The notes under the pieces: generated by a model
Seen by the model: the letters and a program-made list of their open reading frames with translations, nothing else
Databases searched by the model: none
What the model was told of the DNA's origin: nothing
Part shown: in pieces, positions 1,204 through 27,104 of the stretch
Layout: each line of letters begins with the position of its first letter
Position numbering within the stretch: the stretch's first letter is position 1
Source: Zancudomyces culisetae HAW-14-8
Taxonomy: Eukaryota > Fungi > Kickxellomycota
DNA: 64,000 nucleotides
Direction of reading: 5' to 3'
Assembly (NCBI GenBank): GCA_052426225.1
Contig: JBNJNM010000011.1
Span: forward strand, 806,001 to 870,000
Translations under genes and position numbers: made by a program

Positions 1204-4200
1204 TTTTTCGAGTTTTGACACTTTATTCTTCCCTTCTAAATCAGTAGTTATGGTTATGTTTATGGTTTTGGTTGTAGATATAGGGGCAATGCCTGTTTAA
1301 TTCGTTCCGCGGTTAAAATTAGAGTGCAAAAAAAGCAGCAAAAGTGTTGCAGTTAGGTTTTTGTAATATAACGGTTCGATCGAGGGTTGGGGTATTATTG
1401 TGTTTCTAAGGGAGAGTAATTTCAATCTATGCAGATGTTGTGTGTGTCTGGGATATTGTACTGACCTCCTTCCTTTATTATGCTTTGTTCTACCCTACCT
1501 CGTTATGTTACAAGAAGTTGGATATATGTAAAAAACAGCGGTATTGATGGGAGGGGAAGGGTGAAAATATACTATGCTTCTGCTCGGGTAGATAGAAATC
1601 ACAAGAATAGAAAAAGAACGTGGACTGTAAAAGTTGCACTTGAGATTCTGAAAAAGTGAAAGAGGTGTTTTTCTTTATTATGTGGAATTCAGTTCTTTTT
1701 TATTCACCTTTCCTATTCTGTTTGCTGTTCTTTATTTTCCTGTTTGCTGCTTTCTATTCCTTTAGATTTTTTTTCTTTGGACAGAAACATCTTTACTTTT
1801 CCAAGATTAGCAATGTCCAAGTTTTTTTTTTTTTTGAATGACCTTTTTATCTAATTTAAATCCCTTGCAATTACTAAAGTCAAATTTACTAAAAAATATC
1901 CATTCCACCCACGCTTTTCCCCAATTTTCTTGTGACCCTTTAGCGAACATATTTCCAATGTATTTCACTTTTCCAGTTTACGTACCTTGATTTTTTAACA
2001 ACAAATTTATGTAATTTTTGCGGTAATAAAAAACAAGCTGTTTTAATACTATTCGTTTAACGCGTATTCTTAGGTAATGTTAAAAAAACCATACTCCAAA
2101 TTACTAAAAAAGATATTTAAAAAAAATCATGTAAATAAGCTGAACCAAAGTTAGTTGGTTTTACTAAATTTCAATCTTCCATTAACCCACATAAGAAGCT
2201 CTGATTGAATCCGTTTTACAAAATCAGGTGAATATTTTTTAAAATACATCAATTGGCTAGAAAGGTAAGCGTGAGGATATTTAACCTCCCCCATTTGGTA
2301 AAGCCCTTAGTAACAATTTTCTCATTTGAAGTTGTCTTAGTGGCACTCTAAATCGCCAAAACACTAGCACAAAAAACTAGTGATAATGAGAATATGGATG
2401 TCCGTTTAGTAATATTTCCCAAGATTCAGGATAGTTTGGACGCACCGCACATTTGCATTAGTACAAGACAGTTTGTTCCGAAATGAAAACGGCGGACAAC
2501 CTTTGAAGATTATCAAAGTTAGTCCTTTGCTATCCAATTACTGGTGTAAATATATATAAATTTATTTAAAACCTCGAGTTGTATCTAGTCTGAACATAGT
2601 GGTAACAAAAAGGAATTTGGGATAAAAGCTGGGGCAGCCAACATCAGATCTGATACCCTTTCCTCCATATCACTACAAGCTCGATTTACTTTGCTTTTGG
2701 CCTTTTTTATATTCGGGTATATGGTGACATTGAGCATTTTAAAAAAAAGATGTGTTCATTTACCTCCACTATTCCTAATAAACTCGGTTGGCATTTAAAG
2801 GTGTTGACACTCCATAATTCGATTTTACATCTTTTGCAGCCATTTTTGACTGTTGACCACTGCTTAAATTGCGAGGTGAGAGTCTTGTGTCCTTGTTTTC
2901 ATCTCATTTGATTTCTATCCTCCAGCCACCTCTCCTCCTCTGATAGTTTGATTTATAGGCGCGCAAGTAACCTTGCGTTTTTTTTTAAAGCTAATGCTGC
3001 TATTAGGCGATTTAGGCTTTACACAGTACAATTATTTTTTTGGTTTTATAAATTTGGTTCTTCCTCTTTTGTTTTAGATGATCGAAGAGTTTTGTAAAAT
3101 TTCATTGTGAAATTCAATTTACCAACCTCGCAAAAGCAAAATAAAATAAAAAAGCTATATGAATACGCCAATTTACCGAATTCCGGAGCAACAATAAAAA
3201 GAGCCCATTATATTAACATTTCAAACTAGTCGAGATAGACTCTTTTTAATATACATACAAATTGGTAAAGTTGCAAAACGGATTCTAGTAAAGGGTACGA
3301 AGAAGTAACGAGTGAACAATCAATCTTAAATTGTACCTTGTACAGAATTACACTTTTTGAGTTTCCTTTTGTTTTTTTTTTTTTAGCCTTGAAAATTTCA
3401 ATAATGTATTTCTACGACCGAGATATAGAGGGAAAGTAACAAAAGCACACGGTATAAACACAGAATTTGAGATATTCGATATGGTACTTTGATTATGCTC
3501 TTACTTTTAACTGCAGTTTTAATATCAATCATAGTTAACAGATGAGGTTTGATTAATTGAATTGATAAAAATCTAATGATTAGATCAGATATATTTTGGT
3601 TCAAAACCGCCAAGGAAAAACACGAATAGAAAAGTGGTTTTTGCCAGTAACTTTTCAAGAAAAGGCTAAAATCAAGACCGATCTTCATTCATTGATACTT
3701 ACAAGGGATGAAAAACATCAAAGCAACTTTATAGAGGTATGATTCATTGCGCTCAGTTGTTTAATAACTAGTTTATAAGTTACCTGTTAGATAAAATATA
3801 CGGACAGTTTGATAAAATCAACGGTCAATTAGGAGAACGAAGAAATAATACCAATCAATGACAAAACTTTCTAAATAGACAGAAGAGTACAGGATAGTAT
3901 ACCGCAGATATGCTGGATTGTATTTTTGCTTTTGTGTAGATACTTCGGATAATTTATTGGGATACTTTGAGGTTATACATTTGTTTGTAGAGGTTCTGAA
4001 TGAGTTTTTTGGAAACGTAACAGAACTCGATTTGATATTCAACTTTTTTAAGGTAAGCTGGTTTTTAGTAGCGCAAATGCTGCTTTCCTCATGATTTTTA
4101 ATATCTTTGCTTTTTTTGATTTTATTTATTTATTTTTTTAAAAAAAACAACACAATAGTATATATACTATATGTCTGGAATATAAAATTAGGTATATGGT

Positions 4201-7200
4201 GTGATTGACGAAATGTTTTTTGCAGGGGAGATCGAAGAGACACGACTTAGAGATATTGTAGATCGTGTTTTGATTCTAGATAGCCTTCAATAACATAAAA
4301 GAGGCATTTTTCTTGCTTTCATTTGATGGTGTCGAGTTACCAGAACAGAGCGTAGAGGGTTTGTAATTTCATTTTTTTCTACTAGAGAACTAGTTTTATT
4401 AGACATGTCAAGCTTTATTATAAATAACATAATAGCATTTTGTAATAAATGTGATAGTAGTGAAATTGGCTATTTCCTCTATGTAGTCTACACTAAAGCA
4501 TAAAGCTTTTAAGCAAAAGTTTAATACACTTGACGTATTGAGTTTTAGATTTGTATGTGGTAGTATATGTGGATAGTTCTATTACAAGGAGGCTTTTGTG
4601 TGTCATCTACTTATCAAGTGCATCCTCATAATACAAAAGTATTAAAAATACTTTTGTACATATTCGTTAGATGTACTGTAATAATAGCATTTGCGGCCTT
4701 GTTCTTTGCAGCAATTTGCGAGCCATTATGTATAAAATAGTGTATTTTGGCATGCAGGCTGTCTCAGTATCATGAGCCGGTGTTAAATGTGTTGAATCTG
4801 CGCGATTGGGATTAGAATCTTCAATTCAAGAGCAAAAAGGATTTATATATGCGACAAGCTTGAGCTTGAGCGTGAGCTTGTTCGCATTCTACATTTGTTT
4901 TATGTTATGTTGTATATGAACTCTCTAACCGGATTATGCAAAAAAAAAAAGTGTGGAAGTTCGGAGAAAAGTATAGGGGAGGAGGAGGCGTACTAATGTG
5001 TTGAGGCGTTTGTTATTTGTCTCTAGTGGTACATTTAGTGGCTATTCTATAAAATGGAATAGGCTCGTACAGATTCTGGTACAAGACAAATGTGTTAAAG
5101 GGGTAAAAACGATTCATCATTACACTGGATGCAAAATGATTCAAAGAAAGCAATTCTGTCTGTATGGGTTTTAGAGCCCGATTCAGAACCATTCAAGTAA
5201 ATACTATTGATCATAATTTATGTTTTTATAGTACTAAAAGAAAGTATAGTGGAAAAGTTAGTTATTCGCAAACAATATAGAAAAGTGCAAGTGGTAATGA
5301 AATTATTTCTACTAAATTATTCATGAGGGTAGTGCAGGTGGGGATGTACCAGAATAAGAAACCTGTGTGGTTGAAGAGTGCTTGGATATTGAGCGGAGGT
5401 ACAACAAAAATAGGAATTATACACATATGCATGTGTGCATGAGGCATGTGCGTTATTGCTCTTTTTCTCACATTGTCTTACCTTTGTATATTCTCCTCTT
5501 GTTAAGTTCAATTCCTGTAAATAGATGATAGCAACAGACAAATGTGAACTTGATAAAGGTCAGGGGTAAACAATAAGAAGACATATTTTATCACCAGTGT
5601 CCGCAGTAGTGAGGTTAGAAAAAGGATGTATCAATAAACCAAATGATTCATTTCAACTTGGATTGGGGCAGGTGGATATGGGGCAACATTCCAGGCGCAT
5701 TCATTATTTTCGGATCAAGAAAGCTTACAGATCGAAACCAGCGAATTAAGTTGAATAAGTTGAAAGATAGCTAAAGTAAAGGCGTGGTGTAAATGGGTCA
5801 ATATCTAAAAATATTCTAAAGTTGCATTATAAATAGATGACAATATATGAGAATATTTGCTGAAAAATTGGGGAAGGGTGAAGGATGATTAGCGTTTACA
5901 AATGTGCAACTACCGGAATGAGATCATCTTTTATCAACAAAGCTACACCAATGGCGACCCTACATGAATTTTTGTATATTATTTAAGTCTGCATACTTTT
6001 TTTTAGTAAGTGAACTGCAGCAAGTATAAACAAAAACCAAAATTCTGCGGATTGTTAGTGACACAAGGATGTGCAAATGCACTTAAAGTTATATAATGAA
6101 AGCAGTTCAGCATTAAATGGTTAATGGTTGTAAAGGCCTTGGGCAGGCATTACTATTTTAACCCAAAATAAGAACATTTGCAACGCTTTATGACTCAGGA
6201 TACAAATGTGAAGTTGGATGTGTAAATCCCAGAGCTTTAACAAACGTTTATTCGACAGGTCCAACTGTTGGCTTTCAAACCCATGCATGAACTTGTATAC
6301 TTTTTAATCTCTGACAAAATGCCTTGTAAAAAAACACAGCCAATAGAAACGTTATAAACCACCCCATCCAAAATTGATAAAACCAGAGCTTATCACATGA
6401 AAATTTGCGATTTATTTTTTCATTCGAGTCAAAAAAGGTAAAAATGAAAAAAAGAGCAAAAGAGAGTATATTTCGTTTTATCAGGTGATCAAACATGTCC
6501 TACACATGCCGAGAAGTTACTGAATTAAAGTGTGGCTGTTGTACATAAAGAAATGGGCAAACAGTACTATGAATAGAAGAGTATAGTAGATCGTGTGTAG
6601 TAAGGAACGGTTGCAGAGTTGAGTACACTTTATGAATGTGCCATCTGTTTAGATAGTTTGTATGCGTTTAGAGGGGAGGAGTGGGAGTGGAGGATGGGGA
6701 AGGGAGGGTCAATTTGAAAAAAAAGTGTATATCGTATAGAATCTGGTTTGTATTTTACATGTAATGGTGGGAGTGTATTTGGACGAGTGTACTCTGGTTG
6801 TGCTGTTTTACTGGGCTAAAACCGCGGATTAAACCAAGGTTTTGGTTTGCAATTTCTTATTTATGTATATACATATGCCTTCTAGTGCACTTTTTAGATA
6901 CAAGTTCTGATTGATAGGTGTATTTATCTGTCACATAACAATCGAGAACAGATGGTTACATCAAGACAAAACCATCTGAGAGTTTTAAGATGTATGAGCT
7001 TGATAGCATTTCATTCTTAATGTGAAACTAGAAAATGATACATCAAGAAAAGCCGGGAAAAAGGGGGGGGATAAGTAGAGAAGCATAAAAAATATACACG
7101 ATTGTTTATGATTACTAAATTCCAATAACGGAATATAGCAAAATTTGGAGATTAAATAAATAAATTAAAATTCACAAAGGGCGGTGTTAGGCGGATGGCT

Positions 7201-8478
7201 GGGGTTAGAATTTTGAGTCAACAATAACAAAAAAAATTGGGGATTTGATTTGTTTCAAAAGGCATAAAGTACACTAAATTATCAGGAAAAACAGTTGGAT
7301 ACAAGATGAATTAAAGACGAAATAGAGGAGAAATATTACTCTAGAGAGTAAAATTCAAAGTGTGGCCCAAAATATGAAGAAGGTTCTGGAATCATATTGC
7401 GATAAGATTGGTAAGATATTGCGACAAAAACCGTTTGGAGTAAAGTGGCAAGTTTTTATTGTGGGTGGATGAGTGTGTTCTTTTCTTTTAGTAAAAACAC
7501 AAGGTTAAATTGCTCAATTTCATTAACTTGAAGAAAATACATGTACAAGTACAAATATTAAAAAAGCTAATTACTTATAGGCCTTTTTTATAAATGTAAA
7601 CAGGAAAACACACGTAAAAAAAAAGAAAAACATTCAAATCGTCAATTGCAATAAAAAAAAGTAGATAAAATTACCAGCTTGATAAAAAAAAACAATGTTG
7701 TTGCAAAAAAAAACTTTTTACTAAATGCGATTTAGAAAAAAAAAATTGGGGAATCGTAATTTAAGTAGGCAGGATAAACTTGCCACATTGGTTGTACTTG
7801 AAAATTTGATTAGGTGTTTGTCAAAGACTTAGAGTAAAGCAGAAATAAATCGACGAATATTAACTAATCGATATCATCAACAAATATGTGGTAATTTTTA
7901 ATAAAATGGGTTTTTAGCTCCAGTAAAATTGAGGTTTGAATTGGTTATTGGATTAGAAAAGGTTCAGAAAAAAAATTTTATGAGCCAATACAGCAAATTA
8001 AAAGCTGATTACATAGACTTTTAGATGTGCTTTGAGAAAAAAAAGCAAAAGTTCTAGCATGGGATATTTCATCGTTTACGAAACAGAGAAGAAACTAATA
8101 CTCGTTTTGGGTAATAATGAATTTGTAGTGAATTAAAGAGCCTATCTAAATGAGTTTGTCGATAACTTTGAAGGTATTAACCATGAGAATTGGACTAAAA
8201 GGCATCAACAAAGTGCAACTTTGAAAAAAACTAAAAATTGCGATTACAAATTGGTAAGGTAGAGTTAGTTAGCGCTAGATTGCAGAAAAGGCAAATAGAA
8301 CAAAAATATTAACTAGCACCAAGGAAAAGCTTGGAAGCAAAGAAAAAAGCTGATTCAAAAGAAAAACTATATAAAGCAAACACAATGATATCCAGGAAAT
8401 AGAGAACTAAAAAGTCTTTTTCCCCTAAAACAAAAATTCTTAAGCGAATAGAGAATATACCATAGAAAATACTCGAAA

Positions 8479-10668
8479 ATGATGATGAAATTGGATAATG
8501 CATTACTTATGCTTTTGGCTACAGTCGCCTCATCAGCAAATGGTGCCGTAGTAAACAGAAACGAGTTGCGTATGCTTAATCTCAGAGATGCCGCTGTAGT
8601 TGCATACCCAGTAGCCTCATCAACTGTTACAACAGAATACCCAGTAGCACCAACCACCACTGGATACCCAACTGTTGATCCAACAACCACCACCACTGGA
8701 TATCCAACTGTTGCACCAACAACCACCACCACTGGATATCCAACTGTTGCACCAACAACCACCACCACAGCATACCCAACTGTTGCACCAACAACCACCA
8801 CCACTGGATACCCAACTGTTGCACCAACAACCACCACCACTGGATACCCAACTGTTGCACCAACAACCACCACCACTGGATATCCAACTGTTGCACCAAC
8901 AACCACCACCACCGCATACCCAACTGTTGCACCAACAACCACCACCACCGCATACCCAACTGTTGCCCCAACCACCACCACCACCGCATACCCAACTGTT
9001 GCCCCAACCACCACCACCACCGCATACCCAACTGTTGCACCAACAACCACCACCACCGCATACCCAACTGTTGCCCCAACCACCACCACCACCGCATACC
9101 CAACTGTTGCCCCAACCACCACCACCACCGCATACCCAACTGTTGCCCCAACCACCACCACCACCGTATACCCAACTGTTGCTCCAACCACCACCGTATA
9201 CCCAACTGTTGCCCCAACAACCACTGAGTCATGCGATTGCCCACCAGTAGTCACTTCAGACTGTATTAGTGTTACACAATATGCGCCAGCAGTTACAGTT
9301 ACCGCTGCTCCAGTTACTGTCACTGTTCCATGCACCACCACTGTACACCCAACTGTTGCACCAACCACAACTGAATACCCAACTGTTGCACCAACAACCA
9401 CCGTATACCCAACTGTTGCTCCAACCACCACTGAGTACCCAACTGTTGCACCAACAACCACCGTATACCCAACTGTTGCACCAACCACCACTGAATACCC
9501 AACTGTTGCACCAACAACCACCGTATACCCAACTGTTGCTCCAACCACCACTGAGCACCCAACCGTTGCACCAACAACCACCGTATACCCAACTGTTGCT
9601 CCAACCACCACCGAGCACCCAACAATCTGCTACACTGGACCAGAGGTTATAACTGTCACTGCAACTCCACCACCACAAACAGTCACTGTTACTGTACCAA
9701 CCACCGTATACCCAACTGTTGAACCAACCACAGTCTACCCAACTGTTGAACCAACCACAGTCTACCCAACTGTTGAACCAACCACAGTCTACCCAACTGT
9801 TGAACCAACCACAGTCTACCCAACTGTTGAACCAACCACAGTCTACCCAACTGTTGAACCAACCACAGTCTACCCACCACAACCAACAACCACAGTCTAC
9901 CCACCACAACCAACAACTACAGTCTACCCACCACAACCAACAACTACAGTCACCAGCAGTGTACCAGTCTACCCAACCGCCTCTACTGTAACAGTCACCA
10001 GCAGTACTCCAGTTTACCCAACTGCCTCTACCATTACTGTCACATCCACTGGATACACAACTGTTACCCCAACCACCACCACTGGATACCCAACTGTTGT
10101 CCCAACCACTACCGTCACTTTGTACCCAACCCCAGCTCCAACCACCACTACTGGATACCCAACTGTTGTACCAACAACTGAATCAACCACCTGTGACACC
10201 CCAGTCCCAACCACTACTGGATACCCAACTGTTGTACCAACAACTGAATCAACCACCTGTGACACCCCAGTCCCAACCACCACTGGATACCCAACTGTTG
10301 TACCAACAACTGAATCAACCACCTGTGACACCCCAGTCCCAACCACTACTGGATACCCAACTGTTGTACCAACAACTGAATCAACCACCTGTGACACCCC
10401 AGCTCCAACCACCACTGAGTACCCAACCGTTGCACCAACAACCACCGCATACCCAACCGTTGCCCCAACCACCACTGAGTACCCAACTGTTGCACCAACA
10501 ACCACCGCATACCCAACCGTTGTCCCAACCACCACTGAGTACCCAACTGTTGCACCAACAACCACCGCATACCCAACCGTTGCCCCAACCACCACTGAAT
10601 ACCCAACTGTTGACCCAACCACCACTGGATACCCAGTAGCACCAACCACCACTCCTGCACAATACTAG
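8479..10668 (+). CDS. Secreted Thr/Pro/Tyr-rich tandem-repeat (mucin/extensin-like) protein, 729 aa
   Basis: Intronless ORF with a hydrophobic signal peptide (NALLMLLATVASSANG|AVV) and dozens of xYPTV(A/E/V)PTTT units with synonymous codon variation. No TM segment or GPI signal at the C-terminus. Confidence 0.88.
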   Translation: MMMKLDNALLMLLATVASSANGAVVNRNELRMLNLRDAAVVAYPVASSTVTTEYPVAPTTTGYPTVDPTTTTTGYPTVAPTTTTTGYPTVAPTTTTTAYPTVAPTTTTTGYPTVAPTTTTTGYPTVAPTTTTTGYPTVAPTTTTTAYPTVAPTTTTTAYPTVAPTTTTTAYPTVAPTTTTTAYPTVAPTTTTTAYPTVAPTTTTTAYPTVAPTTTTTAYPTVAPTTTTTVYPTVAPTTTVYPTVAPTTTESCDCPPVVTSDCISVTQYAPAVTVTAAPVTVTVPCTTTVHPTVAPTTTEYPTVAPTTTVYPTVAPTTTEYPTVAPTTTVYPTVAPTTTEYPTVAPTTTVYPTVAPTTTEHPTVAPTTTVYPTVAPTTTEHPTICYTGPEVITVTATPPPQTVTVTVPTTVYPTVEPTTVYPTVEPTTVYPTVEPTTVYPTVEPTTVYPTVEPTTVYPTVEPTTVYPPQPTTTVYPPQPTTTVYPPQPTTTVTSSVPVYPTASTVTVTSSTPVYPTASTITVTSTGYTTVTPTTTTGYPTVVPTTTVTLYPTPAPTTTTGYPTVVPTTESTTCDTPVPTTTGYPTVVPTTESTTCDTPVPTTTGYPTVVPTTESTTCDTPVPTTTGYPTVVPTTESTTCDTPAPTTTEYPTVAPTTTAYPTVAPTTTEYPTVAPTTTAYPTVVPTTTEYPTVAPTTTAYPTVAPTTTEYPTVDPTTTGYPVAPTTTPAQY
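8636..10650 (+). repeat. Coding minisatellite blocks (36-bp, 30/60-bp, 27-bp and 66-bp units) within the mucin-like gene
   Basis: Directly visible units: (G/A)YPTVAPTTTTT, alternating VYPTVAPTTT/EYPTVAPTTT, VYPTVEPTT, VYPPQPTTT, and GYPTVVPTTESTTCDTPVPTTT x4. Confidence 0.95.
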
Positions 10669-13116: not shown

Positions 13117-16100
13117 TTAATCATACCTGTTGTGAGTGTCGAACATACATTTTAGATCCTGTAGTTTTACAATGACATCAACAATCAGGAAAGTATTATA
13201 CATATTGACGGCTCTCTCCCAATTCAAATGGAAATCTGAAGGGCGCTGTGGATCTAAGCACTCAGAACTGTTTGAAATGAACGAAGAGTTACCATGTGAA
13301 CCTGTGTAGCTTTCCAGATATGTCGATCTTTCATTGATGGGAGTGCTATTTTGACATGGGGCACAAGGATATTTGGTCTCCAAAGGTTCACCACCGCTAT
13401 ACACCTCTATATTACTGGTAAAAGACTCGATGTGTCCTGATCTTTTATCAATAGATCCATTAACTATTCCAGATGTGTTTCCTAGAGTTACTTTCAGATG
13501 TTGTCTGTTCCATATTCTCCAACACCGAAGTAAGGTCCTATTTACTCTATCGCTTTTATTTGTCAGCATATTACGTTTATCGACATGACCGAATTGAATT
13601 AATCCATTGCTACACTCCACATAAAGCTGGTAAAGACATGATAGGTAATGGTATACAAGTGAAGATGAAAGCTGGGCTCTGAGCCCCATGGCTATAGCAA
13701 AAAGTTGTTCAGTATATTCATCATTGGGAGTTTCAAGTAAAGAGGACTCTGTACTATCTTCAGTAAATTGTTTACTTGAGGATCCGCAAGTAGAATTTTC
13801 AAAAAGTTTATCAAGGATGGTGTTTCTATCGGCGTATACGCTGGTCTGACCATGTGTATTTTCGTTTTTTTCTTTGATATCACAGTCCAAGTGGTTCTTT
13901 TGTCCATTGTTTGTTATCACACTTACCTCACTTAGTAGCTTTTTCGGCGTTTTATCCATTATTCGATTGATACAAACATTTTCGCTGTAGAGTCGCAGCT
14001 TTTTAATAGCTTGTTCTGTTTTTTTTCGAAAATAATGACTATCTGCTGTTTTTATTGCTCTATCGAGTATCACCAACTTTTTAAAAGCGTTGACCTTTAA
14101 ACGAGTAGCGATCGACTCTGCAAATTCATCAAGTCTCCGTATAAGATCCCCACTCAAGTTCTCAGCAAAATTCGAACCAGAACCTCTCTTATCTTGTGCA
14201 CCTGAGGTCATGTCAGATACCGGCTGCTTCGAAGTGTACCTAAACATAGATTTACTACTATCTCCCGCCTGGAGTTGTCTATTGTACCTTAAATTATTCC
14301 AAATGTCGCTGACTCCAAAGTCGTAAAGCGCGGTATCCGAAAAAAATATTCGCTTGGACAACTCAGGACGCATAAGAGAAGGTGAACTATTTTTTGTTGG
14401 CAAAAGTTTGTTGTTTATGCGTAGTGTTTCTTCTGATAATGAGTCTGAATGAACCCTGAAATGTTGCGGCATTTCACTAAAGATTCTGGGTGCGGGAGGT
14501 GACACCTCCACACCTTGAGTAGAGCAACCACCGGTTTTGTTCGTCTCTGAAACCAGATTTAAAAGCGCGGGTTCCTCAACTAGACTATGTGTTGTTTTTT
14601 GCAAATCACAACTATTTGTGTTTCCATTGGTATTCAGCACACAATGGGCGTGTAAGTCCGCATGGTCGTCAACCATCAAAACATTATTTGCTATTTTTGA
14701 TTCTGAAGACTTTTTTCTGGCATTCTCCTTATAAGTCACCCCTAAAGGTTCATACGAGCCGTAAATATGGCTGCTTTTTTCATTCACCAAGACGTTATTG
14801 TGGTAGCTGGCTCTACCGCACAAATCTTGATTGTTATACTGGCTGCGCTTATACGCAAGATAGCCTTGTATACCGTTTGATACATAGTTCCTATCACTTC
14901 CCAATCTCTTTATATCGTCAAATGCCTTTAGCCATACAGAGAATGCATGTTTTCTGAGACCATTTGTATAGGATTTTACTCTTTGTGTATATATGTTTGT
15001 GGATTTGTAATACGCATTAGATGTTGCAATATGTTGTACACGTATTTGACTGCCGCACCTGAGTCTGCAGATTAGAATGTTCATTGTGTGCCGTAGATAC
15101 CAGACATGCCACTTATTTTCTATGTTTTTGAGACAAGCATGCTCTTCACGCCACTTCGTTAAAGCTAAATAAAAAATCGCCCTTGTTTTTTTTTCATGAT
15201 ATTTCAAAAGCATCTTTTTCGTCTGCAAGCACTCATGACGAACATGTAAAAATAACTCCTTGCAAACTGCTGAGCGATTATTCTGGGCCAACAACTTGCA
15301 CTTTTCTAAAAGCATTCCAGTGTATAAAATATGATTTAGCAATTTCCGCTTAACGTCTTTATGCCAAAATAATTCTTTTGATTCTATATCTGCAAAATAT
15401 TTTTTACATGCCTTTAGCTTATTCAAAAAGGAGAATTCAATCCGTGTATTTTTCCTAGTCAGAAAAATCATCTCCAATCTTTTTAAGCGCCTAATCCTTG
15501 AATCCGAATAATTTACAACTTCAATAAATTCCAGAGTATTGCGAGTATAAACATTATCTTTCCGAGCAAACAAAACCACCTTATGGAGAACATCATATTT
15601 CAGTTTTTCCGTCCTTATTTTTACATATTCGCGAAAAAGTATGACCAAATGTTTAATTTTGACTAACTCAGCGATGGTTCTGCTATAGACCATATTTTTT
15701 CTAAATGTTTCGCCCTTTTTAGCTAATAGCAAGAGGCTGTACTCATTTTTATTATTCATGTCGACTGCATTTGTTCTTAATACGTGATTTGAGCTCGCGA
15801 ACTCGCTCTCAAAAGCCGAGTTGAAAAACGAGTGTTTTACGCCCTCGCTCTGCGCTGTAAGTTTCGATATTTGTGACCCCATCAAGAAAAGATTGTACAT
15901 AACTCTACTATCATGTGCATTTTGGTCGTCTTTATCCGCAAAATTATTTTCAAATGGGAAAATACTCGATAAGAGCCTCTGATTATTTCTCTCTAAAGAC
16001 CGAAGCAACAATTTTCTCCACCTATTTATCTGCTGTTCTTCTCCCGTTTTACACCTTCTATTCAACCATAACTCAAAAACTCGCTTCTTTAGCTTTTTAT

Positions 16101-16167
16101 TGTAGAATTCAATTGCTATAGACCAATTTAGCAATGCAACCTCACGTCGCTGTACGCCTTTTTTCAT
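13117..16167 (-). CDS. Large hypothetical protein with Sfi1-like Trp repeats (possible spindle-pole-body/centrin-binding protein); 5' exons unresolved
   Basis: 1016-codon open frame. Recurring basic helical segments ending in F/L-x-x-W: AIEFYNKKLKKRVFELW, FYLALTKW, KHAFSVW, LLRCWRIW. Confidence 0.55.
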   Translation of the reverse strand: MKKGVQRREVALLNWSIAIEFYNKKLKKRVFELWLNRRCKTGEEQQINRWRKLLLRSLERNNQRLLSSIFPFENNFADKDDQNAHDSRVMYNLFLMGSQISKLTAQSEGVKHSFFNSAFESEFASSNHVLRTNAVDMNNKNEYSLLLLAKKGETFRKNMVYSRTIAELVKIKHLVILFREYVKIRTEKLKYDVLHKVVLFARKDNVYTRNTLEFIEVVNYSDSRIRRLKRLEMIFLTRKNTRIEFSFLNKLKACKKYFADIESKELFWHKDVKRKLLNHILYTGMLLEKCKLLAQNNRSAVCKELFLHVRHECLQTKKMLLKYHEKKTRAIFYLALTKWREEHACLKNIENKWHVWYLRHTMNILICRLRCGSQIRVQHIATSNAYYKSTNIYTQRVKSYTNGLRKHAFSVWLKAFDDIKRLGSDRNYVSNGIQGYLAYKRSQYNNQDLCGRASYHNNVLVNEKSSHIYGSYEPLGVTYKENARKKSSESKIANNVLMVDDHADLHAHCVLNTNGNTNSCDLQKTTHSLVEEPALLNLVSETNKTGGCSTQGVEVSPPAPRIFSEMPQHFRVHSDSLSEETLRINNKLLPTKNSSPSLMRPELSKRIFFSDTALYDFGVSDIWNNLRYNRQLQAGDSSKSMFRYTSKQPVSDMTSGAQDKRGSGSNFAENLSGDLIRRLDEFAESIATRLKVNAFKKLVILDRAIKTADSHYFRKKTEQAIKKLRLYSENVCINRIMDKTPKKLLSEVSVITNNGQKNHLDCDIKEKNENTHGQTSVYADRNTILDKLFENSTCGSSSKQFTEDSTESSLLETPNDEYTEQLFAIAMGLRAQLSSSLVYHYLSCLYQLYVECSNGLIQFGHVDKRNMLTNKSDRVNRTLLRCWRIWNRQHLKVTLGNTSGIVNGSIDKRSGHIESFTSNIEVYSGGEPLETKYPCAPCQNSTPINERSTYLESYTGSHGNSSFISNSSECLDPQRPSDFHLNWERAVNMYNTFLIVDVIVKLQDLKCMFDTHNRYD

Positions 16168-17171: not shown

Positions 17172-18107
17172 TTAAGAGGCGGCATCACTAGGGGCATCTG
17201 ATGAAGCCTCTTCAGTATTATCAGAGGTGGCTTCAGATTCAGAGCTCTCAACTGAGGTATCGGCTGGAGCCTCAGTTGTCGCGCTCTCAGCTGAAGTGTC
17301 GACTGAAACCTCTCCAGCAGCATCAGACGAGGTCTCAGTTGCAGCTCCAGTGGCTGATGCTGATGAAGCGGATGAAGCAGATGAGTCAGTTGAAGTGGAT
17401 GTACCGGTGGTTGAACCCTCTGATTTCTCATCCGAATCCTCTGAATCCTCATCTGAATCTTCAGTATCTGAACCATCTGAGGTTGGTTTTGATGGACTTG
17501 GTTTGTTCCCTCCGTCATTACCTTTCATTTTAACCAATACATCGTGTAATGCGTCCAAGTAGTTTTTCTTTTCTTCGGAGGTCATCTGTGCGTACGGCTT
17601 ATCAGGAAACAATGGCTTACTAGATGCATCACCTCCACTTCCGCTTCCACTCCCACTCCCACTCCCACTTCCGCTTCCACTTCCACTTCCACCCCCAACT
17701 CCACTTCCGCTTGCACCACCTTTCATTTCAATTCGCATTTGGTTCAAAATGTTTCGCAAAACGTTTGCATCAATGACAAGAGTATTTCCTGGTCCTCGCT
17801 TAGAGTTAGATAGAATCATCTGGTACGCTTTAAGAGTAGAAATATCAACTGCAGTGCCTGGCACACTTACTGGAGCAGTAGAAGAGGAGACTGCACTACT
17901 TGTAGCACTTGGAGCTGAAGATGCTGGAGCTGTACTGCTTGGAACACTTGCAGCACTTGTGGCACTTACAGCGCTTGTAGCATTTACAACACTTGAAATA
18001 GAAGATGCTAGGCTTGTACTGCTGGCTGCTGATGTATCAGTGCTTTGGGCCAATACTGATAGTCCGAATAGTGAAAGAACTGAGACGTATTTCATAATCA
18101 TTTTCAA
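17172..18107 (-). CDS. Secreted Ser/Ala/Thr-rich protein, paralog A (311 aa) with (GS)n linker and acidic tail
   Basis: Signal peptide MKMIMKYVSVLSLFGLSVLA|Q; intronless ORF; paralogous to 26319-27104. Confidence 0.85.
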   Translation of the reverse strand: MKMIMKYVSVLSLFGLSVLAQSTDTSAASSTSLASSISSVVNATSAVSATSAASVPSSTAPASSAPSATSSAVSSSTAPVSVPGTAVDISTLKAYQMILSNSKRGPGNTLVIDANVLRNILNQMRIEMKGGASGSGVGGGSGSGSGSGSGSGSGSGSGGDASSKPLFPDKPYAQMTSEEKKNYLDALHDVLVKMKGNDGGNKPSPSKPTSDGSDTEDSDEDSEDSDEKSEGSTTGTSTSTDSSASSASSASATGAATETSSDAAGEVSVDTSAESATTEAPADTSVESSESEATSDNTEEASSDAPSDAAS

Positions 18108-18524
18108 TTACTTTGTTATTTTCTGTTGTTTTAGTTGTAGACTAATTATTATATTAAGACTGGTAATTAACACTGTATAATAAATATACTTTATATTTTT
18201 GTAATGAAAAGAAATATGGGAAAGTCGATACGATATTTATAGTTTTTTTTTTTTTTCTCGTTTTCAGTGTCATTTAGATTCTTGGTACTAAACATGTATG
18301 AGTATATGGGCTACTATCAGGTGCAATATGGTAACAAACATATGAATATTCTATTATGTGCATGTATTGATGTAATATTTGTTCCGAATTTAGCTAATGG
18401 CCATTTAAAATGTAAAGAAAGTGGATATTTGGAAGCTAATACAGAAAATTGTGCAAACAAAAGAGAAATGTATTGAAGGTGATTAGAGTATACAGTGGGC
18501 TATGCATTAACGAGTATAAACTCT
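17898..18524. repeat. Left arm of inverted duplication (promoter + 5' CDS of paralog A)
   Basis: Reverse complement of 25902-26510. 17985-18524 appears identical to 25902-26441 (coordinate sum 44426 at both the ATG and the outer edge), followed by an 18-bp indel and ~69 bp near-identical sequence. Confidence 0.95.
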
Positions 18525-19733
18525 CCTATGGTACGATCATTTTCTGATCTTTCCCAGGTACCCATTTACTTTTTCTTTTTTTGCTAGATAGATTGCTATT
18601 TAATTTGTTTTGTTTTGTTTTTTATTCACTGCCATGATTATTTCAAGGCTTTTTTTACGCCAACTTGGTACAAATTGTCTATAGAGGGTATTATATTACC
18701 ACTCTATTAGCTGAATTGTATCCACTATAATACTTTTAAATCAAAAAATTTCTCGACAGCCTGTAACCAAAGTCTTCTAAATCGTAATGATCAGCCACAA
18801 AAATGTATATGCCAAGTCCAAAGCAAATAAATAAAACAATGAGTGGTAAATGGAACAAACTACGAGGCTTTGCTGCACTCACAAACACATTTAACATGAT
18901 TGAGGTATAGCTAGTAAATTAATTTTATTTAAAAACCAAAAACGAATACACCAATCCAATAACCTCATTGAATACTCAGATATTCCATATCCCTCTTTTC
19001 ATGCATCCCTCCCTATCTGCAAATGCGCCAAATCTTTCAAGACAATTTAATTTTTTCTCAATCCTACTAGGGGCCCAAAAAAACTTCAAAGTAAATAAAC
19101 CCAATGGTCCAGTCGCTCTGATTTTCAAGAGCAAAATACTATCTTGACAGTATTTGTTGCAATGTTCTGAAAATAGAGCTATTAACCATTTATATTACTC
19201 GACCAAATGTGTAATTCTCAGTACTTGAAGTTTGAGGGGCTGAAGCTTGGGTAGGGGAGGGGGAATGTTATTCTTGAAGCTTTTGCAAAGCTCGAGTTCT
19301 TGGGTTTAACTTGTTCTGCCATCGTGTTATTTCCGAGTAAACTCAAATACTATACAGTTTGCTAGCTTTTAAATTGTTACGTTTTTGATCTGGTGCCAAA
19401 TAATAATTGCAAATTAGTTTTGCAAGAAAAACTAATGGAAGATAGATAACAATTCAAAAACTTTCCAAGAAACAAATCTTTATTTTTTAAGCACAACTCT
19501 TACTCTAATGAGAAATTTTCATTTAGAAAGATGCTTAGAACAAAATAAAGATTTCAAATCCCCCTCCCCATCCCTGTAATTATCGCTTTAAGTTATCAAC
19601 GAATTCTTCCTATTCGACATGGTTGGTTTATCATGCGAAGTGGTACGTTGATCCCTGTTTATTTATTTACAAAAGAATTATATTTTCTATTTTGGCAATT
19701 CCGAAATAGATTAAAAAAGGAATCAAGTAAATT

Positions 19734-21149
19734 TTAGTCAAGTAAAAGTTTAAATGGGTAGCTAGGATCTTTCGTTCCTATAGCTGAAAATACAAAGCTC
19801 CATGTGAAGACCAGCGTAAAAACACAAAGAATCACTACACCAGCTTCTGATCCCTTATCTTCCAAATCGCTAATATAACTTGTTAGAATAACAAATGTAC
19901 CTGCCAATACGAGATCTAAATAATAAGCATCAAGTTAATACAAATTAATACAAATACTCATTTAGCACTTGGTAGAAATAAACTTTAGACTTACATGCAA
20001 GAAAAATTGTATGCATTTCTACTCCGAGCTGAGACTGAGTTCCGGGAACAAAAATTATCGGATCCATGGACTCTCGTTTAGCCAAAATATAACTAGGTCT
20101 GTTGATATTTACCCACATATACCCAGCTTGAAGTAAAAGAATAAAAATTATTATTAGAGTCAGCACTATGTTCTTAACATATGCTTGTATTTCGGGATTG
20201 AGGTGGCTTCTAAAAGCCATAACGAGCACCATAGAAATAATAACTAGAAGCTGAGCATAACCATATAATGATTGCTTTGTACGCACTAGGATCTAATTTT
20301 TATATATCTGTTAACGTCATAAAAAACCCTCTCACAGCTTTTGCAAATATGACATACATTATCCTCTGTCTGCAATACTTTGCATATTTCCATCTCTAAT
20401 TCATCGTGCTTGACTCTATAATATTAACAAGGAAAGTATAGGCTATATCGCAGAAATATGTGAATAAAAATTTACAGGCTATTGATATATACCTCTTGTT
20501 TAAAGCGATCTCTTTAATAGAGTTTTTTGGAGATTTATCGTTCGAGGTAGGAGGTTTCAAGATAAAAAGTTTAGGAACCTCAATCTACAAGTATTCGCAT
20601 AGAGGCACCAATATATATGTTTACATTTATCCATAAATATAAACATAAAAATATATGTATTTACCAATATTAAAACAGATATCCAAGTATAATATAAAAT
20701 GGAACATTACCTCTAGTTCGGCGTTTGAAATGTCTAAAAAATCAACTTTTATAAAATACAACTCATGAATACCACATTTTTTGTTCTCAGACTGAATAAT
20801 TTTAGACACTTCCTCTTCTATTGTCCTATATACTCGGTTGTATTCAAAGTTAAATCAAAATTTTGATCAAAACAAAAACATCCCTACTCTGCAATATAGG
20901 CATAAAATTGAATAAATGGCAGTACCTGCAATATTTGCATTTTATGTCGCTTCTTATTGTCGTCACTAAAAGAACTAGTGGCACTTTTTGATTTTCCAGA
21001 TAAATATATCTCTCCAGCTGCTCCTTTCCAACAGTGTTCCAACCTCCTTTCCTCAAACCAACGTCCGAGGCCCCAGTCTTAAAAAAATAACAAAGAATGA
21101 GTGTAAAGCACACCCGCATAAAGCGTAAACTAATCTCTGTTATTCTCAT
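19734..21149 (-). CDS. OST3: Oligosaccharyltransferase subunit OST3/OST6 (MAGT1/TUSC3 family), multi-exon
   Basis: Signal peptide, thioredoxin-like CKYC, GYMWVNINRPSYI..IFVPGTQSQLGVE between TM helices, C-terminal KDPSYPFKLLLD*. Confidence 0.82.
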
Positions 21150-21505
21150 TGGTACTTTTTAAAATCTAGTTCGTATTCTCGGCTTTCTGTATTTGATTTG
21201 AATGTCTTTTTATTGAGGATGGAGCACAGAATAAACCAAGTAATCACAATAACCCAGTTTGAGTGTGGGTCAATTTGTCAAACTTTGAGTTTTTTTTTGT
21301 TTAATTTACCCTATTTACAACATAATCTAAAGCATTGCTCAACTCTGGCAATTTCGAGCCATTTACGTAAACTGTCCTAATTATTTGTTGTTGTGATCCA
21401 CTAGATCTGGGAGTTGGCAAAATGGATAAAATATGAGATAATTACAAAACTACTTATGACACTTACTTTAGAGCAAGTCTACCTATTTATGGATATTGTA
21501 AGGAT

Positions 21506-22751
21506 ATGGCAGAACTAGAAAAACGCATAATGAAAAGGGAGCTTAGGAAAAACATAAACTCAATTCTTCGTAGAATACCGGATTCTCAAGTCAGCACACA
21601 ATGTATGTGTTTTCTTTGTTATATGTTTTTTTTTGTTATATGATATTAGAACTTAGATACCACTTTGTATAGCTGCACAGATTTACAAAAAGTTGCTAGA
21701 GTTGCCACAGTTTAACCACTCCAAAAGAATATGTATTTATCTACATATGAATAAGGAAGTTTGTACATCAATGATTTTGCAGAAATGTTTTGAAATGAGT
21801 AAATTCCCAACACTAACTTTTAAAATAGAATTCCCTTTCTCTGTTCTTCTCGCTTTCTGAATATTTGTATTATGACACATATTACAACACTCATAGTTTA
21901 CTGGAAACTATCTGAATATACGAATAGAAAAGGAATGCTTTATACCTCTTATCAAAAATGACGATATGGACATGGTGAAATTAGACTCAATGTCCGATTA
22001 CTACAGCTTGCCCAAGAATAACTGGGGCATACCTGAACCAGGTTTGAGTGATAATAGGGCGACGTGTATGTATATTTTTATCGGTTCATTTGTTTATTAT
22101 CTCTTTATGTGCACCGTTTTTTTAGGATGGCTGGATTGATAAGAGCTATTCCTGAAAGGAGAGGGAAGGGTTGTTAATCTGGCGTTTGTTTGCTTGCTTG
22201 TTTTTCATCTAACAGTTATCATTTCTAATACAAATATCCTTACTGTATTTTAATAGGCTTCGATAACAAGAACCAGGCTCCTGACCTGGTAATAGTTCCA
22301 GGGTTGGCGTTTGATAGGGGTGGAAACAGATTGGGTCGTGGAAAAGGGTAGCATCTCGCATCTTATGGTTTTTAAATACTTTGAACAAAGTCATGATAAG
22401 ATGCTATTTACGGACCTGAATATTTTTGTGCTTTGAACTTTAAAAAGTGTAATGTGTGTATTTGTAATACAAAATAGTTTTTACGATCGCTTTTTCCAGA
22501 GATGTCATGAGTTTTGTAAAACTCACAATATGAACCCACCTCATCTAGGTAAATATGAGCATACATCAATTCATGTTTTTTACAAGTAAAATTTGGTCGT
22601 TATAACGATTTATGCTGGACCACATATAGTTGGAATTGCCTTTGACGAACAAATCGTTGAAAATGTGCCTGTTTCACGCTTGGATGTCCCACTTGACTGC
22701 ATAATCTCGCCATCGCTTTCTGTTTGCAGAAGCCCAGAGTCACATGTTTAA
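21506..22751 (+). CDS. FAU1: 5-formyltetrahydrofolate cyclo-ligase (MTHFS/Fau1), multi-exon
   Basis: Spliced manual translation: KRIMKRELRK.., IYLHMNKEVCT, LPKNNWGIPEP, DLVIVPGLAFDRGGNRLGRGKG|FYDR, GIAFDEQIVENVP..DVPLDCII. Confidence 0.88.
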
Positions 22752-23051
22752 ACTTCACCAGACAACATAGATGTTATTTTCATTTAGCCACCTTTTTAGA
22801 GGCGCTTTTTTTCTAAAAAAAAAAAAAGCTTGGTTGTTTTGGATGTGTTTACGTAGAGCTTCTTAAATCATAGCGCGTTTTTTTATTACTGCATATATCG
22901 ATCTGCAAACCTTTTAAAAATGAAAACTATCTGGATCAAAAAATAAACACTCATAAAAATATGAGAGCAAACCACCATAAAATTGAACAATATGCACACA
23001 CAAAAATTCACACGCAAACTCACACTAATTTTGAGCTGCTGTTACCTGTAC

Positions 23052-23981
23052 TTAACTATCTGCTTGACAAAAATCACAAAATAACTTCAAGAGGGTATCA
23101 TTTTCAAGAGCTCCAAAATGAGTTCCATAATCCTCTTCAACAAGCCTAATGTTTTCCATTTTCAACTCTTGGAGATGCTTAAAGTAATCCTGGGACTGCT
23201 GGTGATCTAATAGCTCGTCTTTTGTGCTACGGATAATCCAGTACTTCAGATGATGCATCATTTCTCCGTGTGGCCTGAATGTGGGAGGATACAACGAATT
23301 CATAACTTCACAATCAGCTTGGCTAAACGGTGCGTGCATAGGTGCAGTAGCATTCCACTTAGTTCTATCAGTGCCAAATGTCATTTCTGTAAACTCTAAA
23401 TAGTCAGGATATCTATCTACTAGTGATGTGTGATCATAGATTCCGCAAAGTCCAATTACACCTCTGATTCTTTTTGAAATCGGAAGATCACTCCCATCAG
23501 CATCTAAGCTCTCCCACCAAGCTTGGGGAGGGTCAAGAGCTGTCAAACCTGTCAGATGACCGCCTGCAGAATGTCCACACAGATATATTCTTGATGAATC
23601 ATAGCCGTATTTTGTACCATTCTGCACCAGAAACTCAATTGAGCTCAAGCAGTCAAGCCAGTGTTTTGGGTGTTTAAATGAGGGCGGAAGCTCTCTGTCA
23701 GTCAGCCTGTAATTGATTACACAAATAGAAACAAGCCCACCAGTGGCAGATTTTTCTGTTCCCGTCGCACATGCCTGTTGACCGAATTTGGCCATCGTGG
23801 TGCCCAGATAGACATACTCCGACTTGTCACTCGATCTCCAACAGCCTCCATGAATGTAGACAAAGAGGGGTGGTAGGCGCTCCTGATCGAATGCCTGTTG
23901 AGGTATATACAAGTCAAGGGTTTGTTCCTTATCAGTACTTCCTTCGATGTATGGTATATCCTTGTGTACAATTGTACTCAT
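23052..23981 (-). CDS. Alpha/beta-hydrolase, kynurenine formamidase-like (AFMID/Bna7)
   Basis: QTLDLYIP, YIHGGCW oxyanion motif, GHSAG nucleophile elbow, DELL and THF catalytic Asp/His region. Confidence 0.8.
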   Translation of the reverse strand: MSTIVHKDIPYIEGSTDKEQTLDLYIPQQAFDQERLPPLFVYIHGGCWRSSDKSEYVYLGTTMAKFGQQACATGTEKSATGGLVSICVINYRLTDRELPPSFKHPKHWLDCLSSIEFLVQNGTKYGYDSSRIYLCGHSAGGHLTGLTALDPPQAWWESLDADGSDLPISKRIRGVIGLCGIYDHTSLVDRYPDYLEFTEMTFGTDRTKWNATAPMHAPFSQADCEVMNSLYPPTFRPHGEMMHHLKYWIIRSTKDELLDHQQSQDYFKHLQELKMENIRLVEEDYGTHFGALENDTLLKLFCDFCQADS

Positions 23982-25901
23982 TTTATCTCCTAATTCTTTC
24001 CTCGACTGTTATCTTTTTTTTTTCGTTTTGTATCGAGTTCACTAAAAAAACAATAATAACTAAAACAAACAAAAGGAAAACGTCGGCATTGAGCTAGTTA
24101 ACTACAACTCACCTTAAATATCGCTTTACTAAGTATTTTCCTTTTTTTTATTTGTTAACCTGAATATTGCAACTAATTTCCCTTATCACTTGCACATATA
24201 ACATTTTTGATTGAAACAAGACTTGTCACATCAAATCAGCGCCGATTATATACTTTCCGTCCTTTTGCTCTATTAAATCAATTCGATAGTTGGCCAAATC
24301 AAATTTGCAGCCTTATAATTTGCATCACATAAGTGGTAATATATATTTCCGGAAGCGTAACCTTCACATGTAGCATTCTGCTTCATAAACACGAGTAATG
24401 GTCTAAGAAACATATTTTCCATTTGATTGCTGGTTTTACAACACTTTAGTAGTAAAGAGCCAAAATTTTTAATTTGCCGGTGCACTCTTTTACAAGGTGG
24501 TCTAATATAGGTCCATGTTACAGACTTTTTTTTTGATAGCCTGAATATCTTTAATTCATCCAAAATGAGTCTTCAAGTACACGGATGCATCCTGAACCAC
24601 AGTATACTAAAATACCAAGTTTTCATAATTTAACGCCTGAACACTCAGTTGCTACATTCATCAACACCCTTTTTAAAGCTGATCTTCTTTTCTTTCAAGA
24701 AACTTTCATATTTAAGAAAATATCATGAATGTACTGCGATGAGATGGTTGAAGGTGCGCTGGGGTTGGCATCCAGGTTTTGCTTTTTTATTTTCATATGT
24801 TTAAATTACCATGTTCCTATTTACATTGAGTAACTAAGCCGAGGGTTACTCACCAATAACATTGCTTATAGGAATAACTGCTATTCTGCGTGTGATGTTT
24901 CGACCTTTATGTTTACTCTTGAAAAGAAAGGGTCTACATGTTTATAGTTTTGTATATGTAAATTATATCAGAGTTATTTTCTAAAAATTTTACCCAAAAT
25001 GGTCGAATCACAGCATTTGCTGAAAATACACTTTGATTGTTACCAACACTAAAAATATATGATGTGACATGCGGTCACACATTCTCATCAACAAAGGTTT
25101 TGCTCAATCCAGCCCAGCCGAGTGCTTTAAAGCCTATAATACGCCAACTGATTTTTATCGGCGAATGTGTACCATAACCCATTACAACATAGACGCAAAA
25201 TGATGGTTGGCGTTGGTATATAGGCTAGTGTTTATGAAACAAGCGAAAAACCAACAACTGTCGATTCGTGCTGATATAAATAAAATAAACTAGGGCTACA
25301 AAAACCATGCATTACTTTTATTTTTACTTGCTATGAATGATAATTCCGGTAAAAAAGGTGGTTCAGACGCCAGGATATGATTATTGACTCCTATTTTTGT
25401 GTCGTTGTTTGGCCAGGTAGTCGTTTGGGTTGTATCTTAAACAAAATAAATAGGGATAGTGTGGTGGTTTGTATCGGACCGTAAAACATGGTTTTATTCA
25501 CTAGTACTACATCCACATCGAAAAGCACAATTCCACGCGTTTAAAGCAAGAGACTCTTCAATGATAAACAGCATAGAATTTATTAAGTGCTAGCCCAATT
25601 TTAGCAACCAGTGCTTTATTAGCCAAAAAAAACTGTGTTCAACCTTATATATTTATATTTTTTGTGGTCCCAGTCCAAACACAATTTTTGATTTTGAATG
25701 GAGGGAATTTTTGGGGAGAGGGGTAAGCCTCGCCCCCAATTATGGCGATTTGTTGGAAATCTATTCTAAAGTGAATTCAATTGGCTGATGCACGATTCGC
25801 AATTATTAACGAATGGTATTCTTTTCCACTTGTTTCTAAAAGGTGATCTATTTCTGAAAAACAAACAATTTTAAAATGGATCAAACACATCTTTACAAAG
25901 C

Positions 25902-26510
25902 AGAGTTTATACTCGTTAATGCATAGCCCACTGTATACTCTAATCACCTTCAATACATTTCTCTTTTGTTTGCACAATTTTCTGTATTAGCTTCCAAATA
26001 TCCACTTTCTTTACATTTTAAATGGCCATTAGCTAAATTCGGAACAAATATTACATCAATACATGCACATAATAGAATATTCATATGTTTGTTACCATAT
26101 TGCACCTGATAGTAGCCCATATACTCATACATGTTTAGTACCAAGAATCTAAATGACACTGAAAACGAGAAAAAAAAAAAAAACTATAAATATCGTATCG
26201 ACTTTCCCATATTTCTTTTCATTACAAAAATATAAAGTATATTTATTATACAGTGTTAATTACCAGTCTTAATATAATAATTAGTCTACAACTAAAACAA
26301 CAGAAAATAACAAAGTAATTGAAAATGATTATGAAATACGTCTCAGTTCTTTCACTATTCGGACTATCAGTATTGGCCCAAAGCACTGATACATCAGCAG
26401 CCAGCAGTACAAGCCTAGCATCTTCTATTTCAAGTGTTGTAAGTGCCACAAGTGCTGCAAGTGTTCCAAGCAGTGCAGCTCCAGCATCTTCAGCTCCAAG
26501 TGCTACAAGT
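25902..26510. repeat. Right arm of inverted duplication (promoter + 5' CDS of paralog B)
   Basis: Reverse complement of 17898-18524; identical shadow ORFs at 18267-18476(+) and 25950-26159(-). Confidence 0.95.
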
Positions 26511-27104
26511 ACTACAGGAGGCGCAAGTCTAGCATCTCCGAACCCAAGTTCTACAAACAGCGCAACCTCATCACCAAGCAGCACCTCAGCATCCCCGCCA
26601 AGTGATGTTGATGCCTTCGCAAAAGAGGCGTATGATGCCATAATAAAAGGCGCTAAAAACCGCCATGGTAGATATGTGAGTATTGATAGAGCTCTTCTTA
26701 AAAAAATACTGAAGCAGCCAGATGATTCAGATGATGATGACAAGAAAAAAGATACAAAAACAAAGGATGATGATGATGATGACGACGACGACGAGCACAA
26801 GAAAAAGCCCACAGAAACGAAGGCACCCCCACGTCCTCCAGCAAATAAACCATACAACAGTATGACGCCTGAGGAAAAAAAACAAATATTAAGCGACTTA
26901 ATTGACATGTTGACAAAGCTTAGAGGTGGAAATGTCGCAGCTGCATCAAGTAGTGCAGTACCCACTCCTTCTAAATCTACATCTGCATCCGCATCTTCAT
27001 CTGCAGCTAGCAGCTCGGAGACCGCTGTTTCTTCATCCAAAGATTCTGGATCAGCTAGTGTAAGTACTTCTGTCACAGGCGCCTCACAAGCTACTAGTGC
27101 CTAG
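26319..27104 (+). CDS. Secreted Ser/Ala/Thr-rich protein, paralog B (261 aa) with Asp/Lys-rich linker
   Basis: First 41 aa identical to paralog A; shares the AY..I....K..G....ID...L..IL.Q and KPY..MT.EEKK..L..L.D.L.K..G motifs. Confidence 0.85.
   Translation: MKMIMKYVSVLSLFGLSVLAQSTDTSAASSTSLASSISSVVSATSAASVPSSAAPASSAPSATSTTGGASLASPNPSSTNSATSSPSSTSASPPSDVDAFAKEAYDAIIKGAKNRHGRYVSIDRALLKKILKQPDDSDDDDKKKDTKTKDDDDDDDDDEHKKKPTETKAPPRPPANKPYNSMTPEEKKQILSDLIDMLTKLRGGNVAAASSSAVPTPSKSTSASASSSAASSSETAVSSSKDSGSASVSTSVTGASQATSA

Follow-up and report, generated by a model that had tools for sequence, protein, structure and literature searches.

Evidence for segment-restricted gene conversion between two old, inverted paralogs encoding putative secreted proteins in Zancudomyces culisetae

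The mosquito-gut fungus Zancudomyces culisetae carries a pair of outward-facing genes, here called A and B, that share an identical 5′ segment and have otherwise diverged almost beyond recognition. Both lie in a 64,000-nucleotide stretch of strain HAW-14-8, referred to below as the window (assembly GCA_052426225.1, contig JBNJNM010000011.1, positions 806,001 to 870,000 of the forward strand). Gene A (17172 to 18101, minus strand) is an open reading frame (ORF) of 309 amino acids counted from its first ATG, and gene B (26325 to 27104, plus strand) is an ORF of 259 amino acids. The independent annotation of a second strain, COL-18-3, uses the same ATG for A (301 amino acids) and calls a 263-amino-acid product for B. 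The two genes read outward from a 7.4-kb interior (18525 to 25901) that is occupied by unrelated housekeeping genes. The translation of A begins with a hydrophobic N-terminus that presumably acts as a signal peptide (residues 1–19; 18045 to 18101, minus strand), identical in B (26325 to 26381). Next come a stretch rich in Ser, Ala and Thr, a small helical domain that a (Gly-Ser)n linker divides in two, and an acidic Ser/Asp/Glu/Thr tail. The layout of B is the same, except that its linker is rich in Asp and Lys and its tail in Ser and Ala. The domain of A (17520 to 17849, minus strand) is made up of an N-terminal half, residues 85–121 (17739 to 17849), and a C-terminal half, residues 168–194 (17520 to 17600), on either side of the Gly-Ser linker. 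That of B (26607 to 26927, plus strand) comprises residues 95–131 (26607 to 26717) and 175–201 (26847 to 26927), with the Asp/Lys linker between them. Both linkers vary in length between the strains, by 2 residues in the Gly-Ser run of A (window 17610 to 17720) and by 4 in the poly-Asp run of B (26730 to 26800). A hydrophobic C-terminus is absent from both translations, and the two proteins are more suggestive of glycoproteins that are secreted or part of the wall than of glycosylphosphatidylinositol-anchored ones.

What kind of proteins are A and B? Past the point at which nucleotide similarity collapses, they can be aligned in two motifs only, as the earlier note on this DNA had reported, and their identity is 27% across the domain with its linker. 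Their paralogy is supported by BLASTP (E 2e-07 over the domain). The 64 best-aligned codons show 44% amino-acid and 51% nucleotide identity, a proportion of synonymous differences (pS) of 0.83, which is saturated, and a non-synonymous divergence (dN) of 0.59. Since such values are found in the best-conserved codons, the duplication that gave rise to A and B is ancient. Neither protein has a Pfam match at or above the cut-off. A word search with gene A returned no match, probably owing to an excess of low-complexity words, and a HMMER profile built from the two-sequence alignment of the domain found 0 matches among 1.84 billion representatives, an absence of relatives that is solid just for other species and at the power of a two-sequence profile. 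Searches of the window's genome at the DNA and protein level yielded no third relative of either protein. A feature search of the ESM Atlas gave weak matches only (0.80–0.81), all to fungal hypothetical proteins. AlphaFold2 folded the domain of A as helix, hairpin, helix and long helix with a mean predicted local distance difference test score (pLDDT) of 56, too low to use. A and B match no known family and are lineage-restricted orphan proteins.

The beginnings of the two genes present an entirely different picture. A repeat search identified inverted arms at 17949–18537 and 25889–26477, with a second, short pair extending them. An ungapped comparison that starts at the two ATGs (18101 on the minus strand and 26325 on the plus strand) found perfect inverted identity over 541 bp (−423 to +117), made up of 423 bp of upstream DNA and 118 coding bp (17984–18524 in A and 25902–26442 in B). 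A run of 14 A residues (A14) of the same length in both arms lies within this perfect part. In A the perfect part is followed by a private 18-bp insertion at about 17966–17988, whose placement is ambiguous by a few bases. Leaving this insertion out, one finds a further 69 bp of match that contain 1 mismatch, private to A; beyond them, at +187 in B numbering, similarity collapses. The whole tract therefore measures 628 bp in arm A (17897 to 18524, minus strand) and 610 bp in arm B (25902 to 26511, plus strand). The earlier note had described 417 non-coding and 123 coding bp of identity, which is the same tract, equal poly(A) length included, with a TTG that lies 6 bp before the ATG taken as the starting point of the count; the 18-bp indel, the further ~69 bp and the collapse were likewise seen as it described them. 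Sliding 50-bp windows, the comparison proposed there, are identical at 50/50 positions inside the tract and at ~15–25/50 outside it on both sides. Beyond either end, decayed homology was sought in the non-coding DNA, and the similarity did not exceed that of shuffled controls. The 3′ edge falls inside the repetitive Ser/Ala-coding stretch, and in the window strain the perfect part stops exactly at the 18-bp repeat-unit insertion of A. Either this insertion postdates the last conversion event or it halted the last tract; both are compatible with the data. In arm B the A14 run (−155 to −142) and a TATAAA at −140 occupy 26170 to 26190 on the plus strand, with a mirror image in arm A at ~18236–18256. 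Judged by their sequence, they are likely to act as the core promoter. In all, the tract holds the likely core promoter, the 5′ leader, the putative signal peptide and 62 codons. A DNA search of the 27.1-Mb genome recovered exactly two copies of this cassette, so the search for further copies joined to other 3′ modules, which had been suggested earlier, brought no further modules to light. Because only two copies exist, the tract is not a mobile element. The only other repeats detected when the window was searched for more of the same kind were tandem repeats in an unrelated gene.

The history of the tract can be followed by comparing two strains that were assembled independently. The window genome that we searched comprises 27.09 Mb in 25 contigs, and the window lies inside a contig of more than 1.4 Mb. 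The published assembly of HAW-14-8, built with hifiasm from PacBio high-fidelity (HiFi) reads, has 26 contigs, 27.2 Mb and a GC content of 35.6% (PMC12611240). The window sequence presumably belongs to this assembly, and HiFi reads easily span a repeat of this size. Proteins from the neighbourhood of the pair in the window are 99–100% identical to Z. culisetae GenBank entries. Strain COL-18-3 (GCA_001969505.1) was sequenced with Illumina 2×150 bp reads from 500-bp inserts at 26× coverage and put together with the Ray assembler (PMC5026252). Its contig LSSK01001578.1 contains the hydrolase of the interior, the rest of the interior, an arm, gene A and a 1016-amino-acid neighbour, collinear with the window at 98.8%. 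Contig LSSK01000470.1 begins 254 bp inside an arm, enters the interior at its hydrolase side and crosses all of it, and then continues across a full arm into gene B and the right flank. Contig LSSK01000230.1 holds the right flank and gene B and ends 53 bp into the arm, while LSSK01001585.1 provides a second copy of the left neighbour. COL-18-3 thus has its own A and B, whose bodies are diverged in the same way, and both tract boundaries coincide with those of the window to the base.

The four arms, two from each strain, were aligned, and a column was scored as strain-split when the two window arms share one base and the two COL-18-3 arms another. Within the tract, 602 of the 610 columns are invariant, 7 are strain-split, 0 are paralog-split and 1 is private to gene A of the window, which also has its 18-bp insertion. 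The next ~95 aligned columns past the tract comprise 40 invariant, 0 strain-split and 51 paralog-split columns, together with 4 that are private to gene B of the window. The tree topology flips at the tract edge, within a few bases. The earlier note had named the comparison of orthologous loci as the test of within-genome homogenisation, and the outcome is clear: 7/7 informative tract sites join the arms by strain and the 51 sites beyond join the orthologues. The strains differ at 7/610 positions in the tract (1.1%), much as they do in the flanks (98.8–99.5% identity), and one of the seven differences interrupts the poly(A) run. As the tract varies between strains at an ordinary rate, it is not ultra-conserved. 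The window arms have 0 differences in 541 bp, against ~6 expected had they been diverging since the strains separated (Poisson P ~0.002), and this strain-specific homogeneity covers 423 perfectly identical non-coding bp.

Based on these observations, we propose that A and B are probably subject to segment-restricted concerted evolution, brought about by recurrent gene conversion between old inverted paralogs. The locus displays the hallmarks of such a process: the arms are more alike within a genome than between strains, the homogeneity extends to non-coding DNA, the duplication is older than this homogeneity, and the tract is discrete, with a switch of topology at its edge. A and B are old paralogs of a lineage-restricted, presumably secreted Ser/Ala-rich protein, inverted around three unrelated genes. 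About 610 bp, comprising the whole proximal promoter, the 5′ leader, the putative signal peptide and the first 62 codons, would be repeatedly homogenised between the inverted arms through non-reciprocal homologous recombination, that is ectopic gene conversion. Conversion would be possible only where the copies are still alike, which would make the tract self-maintaining and its edges sharp at the points where homology has been lost. The gene bodies have diverged to synonymous saturation and, having lost homology long ago, would evolve independently. The last conversion in the window strain would be younger than the split from COL-18-3. The earlier note had suggested recent or ongoing conversion limited to the promoter, signal peptide and Ser/Ala stalk, and the site patterns agree with it as far as the promoter, the signal peptide and the beginning of that stalk are concerned. 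As both genes appear to carry the same promoter and secretion signal, their co-regulation is to be expected.

The same recombination may have left a second trace. If an exchange between the arms were resolved as a crossover, the 7.4-kb interior would be flipped and both genes would be left unchanged. In COL-18-3, contig LSSK01001578.1 shows the orientation of the window, with the interior joined to gene A. In LSSK01000470.1, gene B is attached to that end of the interior which in the window lies next to gene A, and a further arm is present at the opposite end of the interior (1–8249 matching window 17891–26155 in the flipped sense); this is just the arrangement that a crossover between the arms would create. 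Each gene has its promoter and 5′ coding end within an arm, and as the arms are identical, both orientations yield the same two genes. A genuine flip and a repeat-resolution error by the assembler are about equally probable, since the 610-bp arm exceeds the 500-bp insert. LSSK01001578.1 and LSSK01000470.1 differ at 22 sites over the 6.1 kb of interior that they share (0.38%). In the left flank, LSSK01001585.1 and LSSK01001578.1 are 1.35% different, and in the right flank LSSK01000230.1 and LSSK01000470.1 are 0.30% different, with the differences spread along the overlap in both cases. COL-18-3 holds two diverged versions of the whole region, corresponding to window ~12281–33172. These could be haplotypes (heterozygosity in a diploid or a heterokaryon), a mixed culture or a large duplication, and one of the versions may carry the inversion.

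Could the identity of the arms have arisen in a different way? It is conceivable that it was created by the assemblers, through a collapsed or consensus-polished repeat or a chimeric join, and the COL-18-3 assembly does struggle at this repeat, with contigs that end inside the arm. We regard this as highly improbable: two strains, assembled independently with different technologies, agree in placing this tract ahead of each of the two gene bodies, the window lies within a large contig of a 25-contig assembly, and a collapse must have chosen the opposite variant at 7/7 sites in the two assemblies. Purifying selection might be thought to have preserved the promoter and leader by itself, without recombination, as the tract spans elements that are presumed to be functional (TATA, poly(A), signal peptide). 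The ordinary rate of change between the strains, with 7 substitutions in 610 bp and one of them inside the poly(A) run, excludes conservation by selection, and selection cannot place the same changes in both arms, so that this explanation is scarcely credible. An unlikely alternative, yet one that deserves closer attention, is a single recent transplant, in which the 5′ cassette passed once from one gene to the other and conversion did not continue. It would account for the perfect identity in the window strain and for the lack of leftover similarity outside the tract. However, the sharing predates the split of the strains, because the same tract with the same two boundaries is present in both, and it was renewed after the split, because strain-specific changes are common to both arms. 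The 0 differences between the window arms, where the strains differ at 7 sites, require at least one later homogenisation, and two independent transplants with identical ends are implausible. An older sharing and a later renewal together make a single transplant insufficient. Several points weigh against recurrent conversion as we propose it. The COL-18-3 arm, at 610 bp, is longer than the library insert, so that the two full arms of that strain are perhaps not independent, and both of them adjoin the same interior end. The arm at the other interior end is covered over 254 bp only, with one diagnostic site, which is of the strain type. Should LSSK01000470.1 be mis-joined at the arm, the two full arms would represent a single physical arm, seen in two haplotypes. 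The identity of the arms in the window strain is that of its assembly, and the expression and co-expression of A and B are predictions. Even in the worst case for the COL-18-3 arms, an explanation without conversion would need all 7 changes on a single one of three equal branches, with a probability of ~(1/3)^7, that is ~0.0005. The conclusion that the window arms were homogenised after the strain split stands.

A quite different possibility is that the arrangement is a programmed system: a flip-flop switch, a constant cassette serving variable modules in the manner of antigenic variation, or an obligate A–B heteromer. The inverted geometry and the possibly flipped interior of one COL-18-3 contig are in keeping with a switch, and identical promoters would give co-expression. 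We consider programming very unlikely. Invertible switches of the Hin, Fim or shufflon type have a recombinase and connect new promoters or coding ends upon inversion. Here both promoters lie inside the arms, so that a flip alters no promoter–gene link and joins no new coding end, and no recombinase was found among the interior ORFs or the COL-18-3 gene calls, which are limited to the hydrolase, 5-formyltetrahydrofolate cyclo-ligase and small ORFs. The earlier note had likened the pair to antigenic variation, with a constant cassette fused to variable modules. This likeness found no support: there are two copies only, DNA and protein searches of the window's genome revealed no archive of silent copies that could act as donors, and the modules are nearly invariant between strains. 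Gene A differs between the strains by 3 non-synonymous and 5 synonymous codon differences and two low-complexity indels, with an identical domain. Gene B differs by 8 non-synonymous and 6 synonymous codon differences and a poly-Asp length change, with one change in the domain. Rapid turnover of the variable part is not seen in this comparison, where the strain differences are mostly low-complexity length changes. In B, non-synonymous differences outnumber synonymous ones between the strains (8 versus 6).

The interior contains a kynurenine-formamidase-like hydrolase (23052–23981, minus strand), exon fragments of a 5-formyltetrahydrofolate cyclo-ligase in two ORFs (~21966–22751, plus strand) and a small membrane-protein ORF (19734–20286, minus strand). 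The cyclo-ligase is annotated in COL-18-3 as a protein of 95 amino acids with PF01812, a model that is probably incomplete. Rfam and tRNA scans over the window found nothing. To the left of gene A, an uninterrupted ORF of 1016 amino acids without a Pfam match occupies 13117–16167 on the minus strand. It is annotated in COL-18-3 as 655 amino acids (64% query cover, 99% identity), and the older model is probably truncated. Further out, at 8479–10668, lies a large repeat-rich ORF with several families of tandem coding repeats, whose periods are 27, 30, 36 and 66 nt.

Why should such a locus be of interest? It presents concerted and divergent evolution side by side in one gene pair, in a clean and quantifiable form and in a barely studied lineage, the Harpellales. 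On the interpretation of recurrent gene conversion, ectopic recombination would be active in this genome between inverted repeats as short as ~0.6 kb. This is relevant to the reading of the genome's many inverted duplications and to the judgement of short-read assemblies of these fungi, in which breaks or mis-joins may occur at such arms. A and B are flagged as putatively co-regulated orphan secreted proteins and become candidates for wall, holdfast or host-interface functions. One might speculate further that the locus is one case of a genome-wide habit of Z. culisetae, in which nearby secreted paralogs keep a conversion-maintained promoter-plus-leader as a selected single regulatory programme for functionally different proteins while their mature parts diverge, and in which the same recombination yields standing inversion polymorphisms, possibly heterozygous in COL-18-3, one contig of which has the flipped join. 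We hold this extension to be unlikely.

The model is not foreign to what is known of other gene pairs. Conversion tracts biased to the 5′ end occur in the human Gγ- and Aγ-globin genes, where the tract ends at a simple-sequence stretch, and in the inverted Hsp70Aa/Ab pair of Drosophila. As in those pairs, the tract described here takes in the 5′ flank as well as the first part of the gene and has an abrupt end, in this instance within a Ser/Ala-coding repeat beside an 18-bp indel. The remainder of the globin and Hsp70 genes is still very similar, whereas the bodies of A and B are saturated at synonymous sites. In the variant surface glycoproteins (VSGs) of trypanosomes and the pilin of Neisseria, many silent donors exist and conversion replaces the variable part. 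The likeness to these systems lies in gene conversion acting on presumably secreted or surface proteins with a constant 5′ part; the difference is that here two expressed-looking genes have their constant part homogenised, while the variable parts are stable. The closest parallel is offered by BMP8A/B, DDX19A/B and TUBG1/2, paralog pairs that display segment-restricted, long-term concerted evolution (Carson and Scherer 2009, PMC2720389). In those pairs, as in A and B, a specific segment that includes non-coding DNA is homogenised within the genome in an old two-copy family and the rest diverges. The Z. culisetae pair differs from them in that the segment is composed of the likely promoter and signal peptide of orphan fungal proteins that appear to be secreted, that the copies are inverted and 7.4 kb apart with unrelated genes between them, and that the time span demonstrated is the one between two strains only. 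The earlier note had stated that no such system was described for this protein family, and this is true of the orphan family itself; the segment-restricted concerted evolution of paralogs, on the other hand, has been described. Segment-restricted conversion is thus already known, and the locus represents no new kind of genetic system. What it adds is a clean instance of this process in an orphan gene family.

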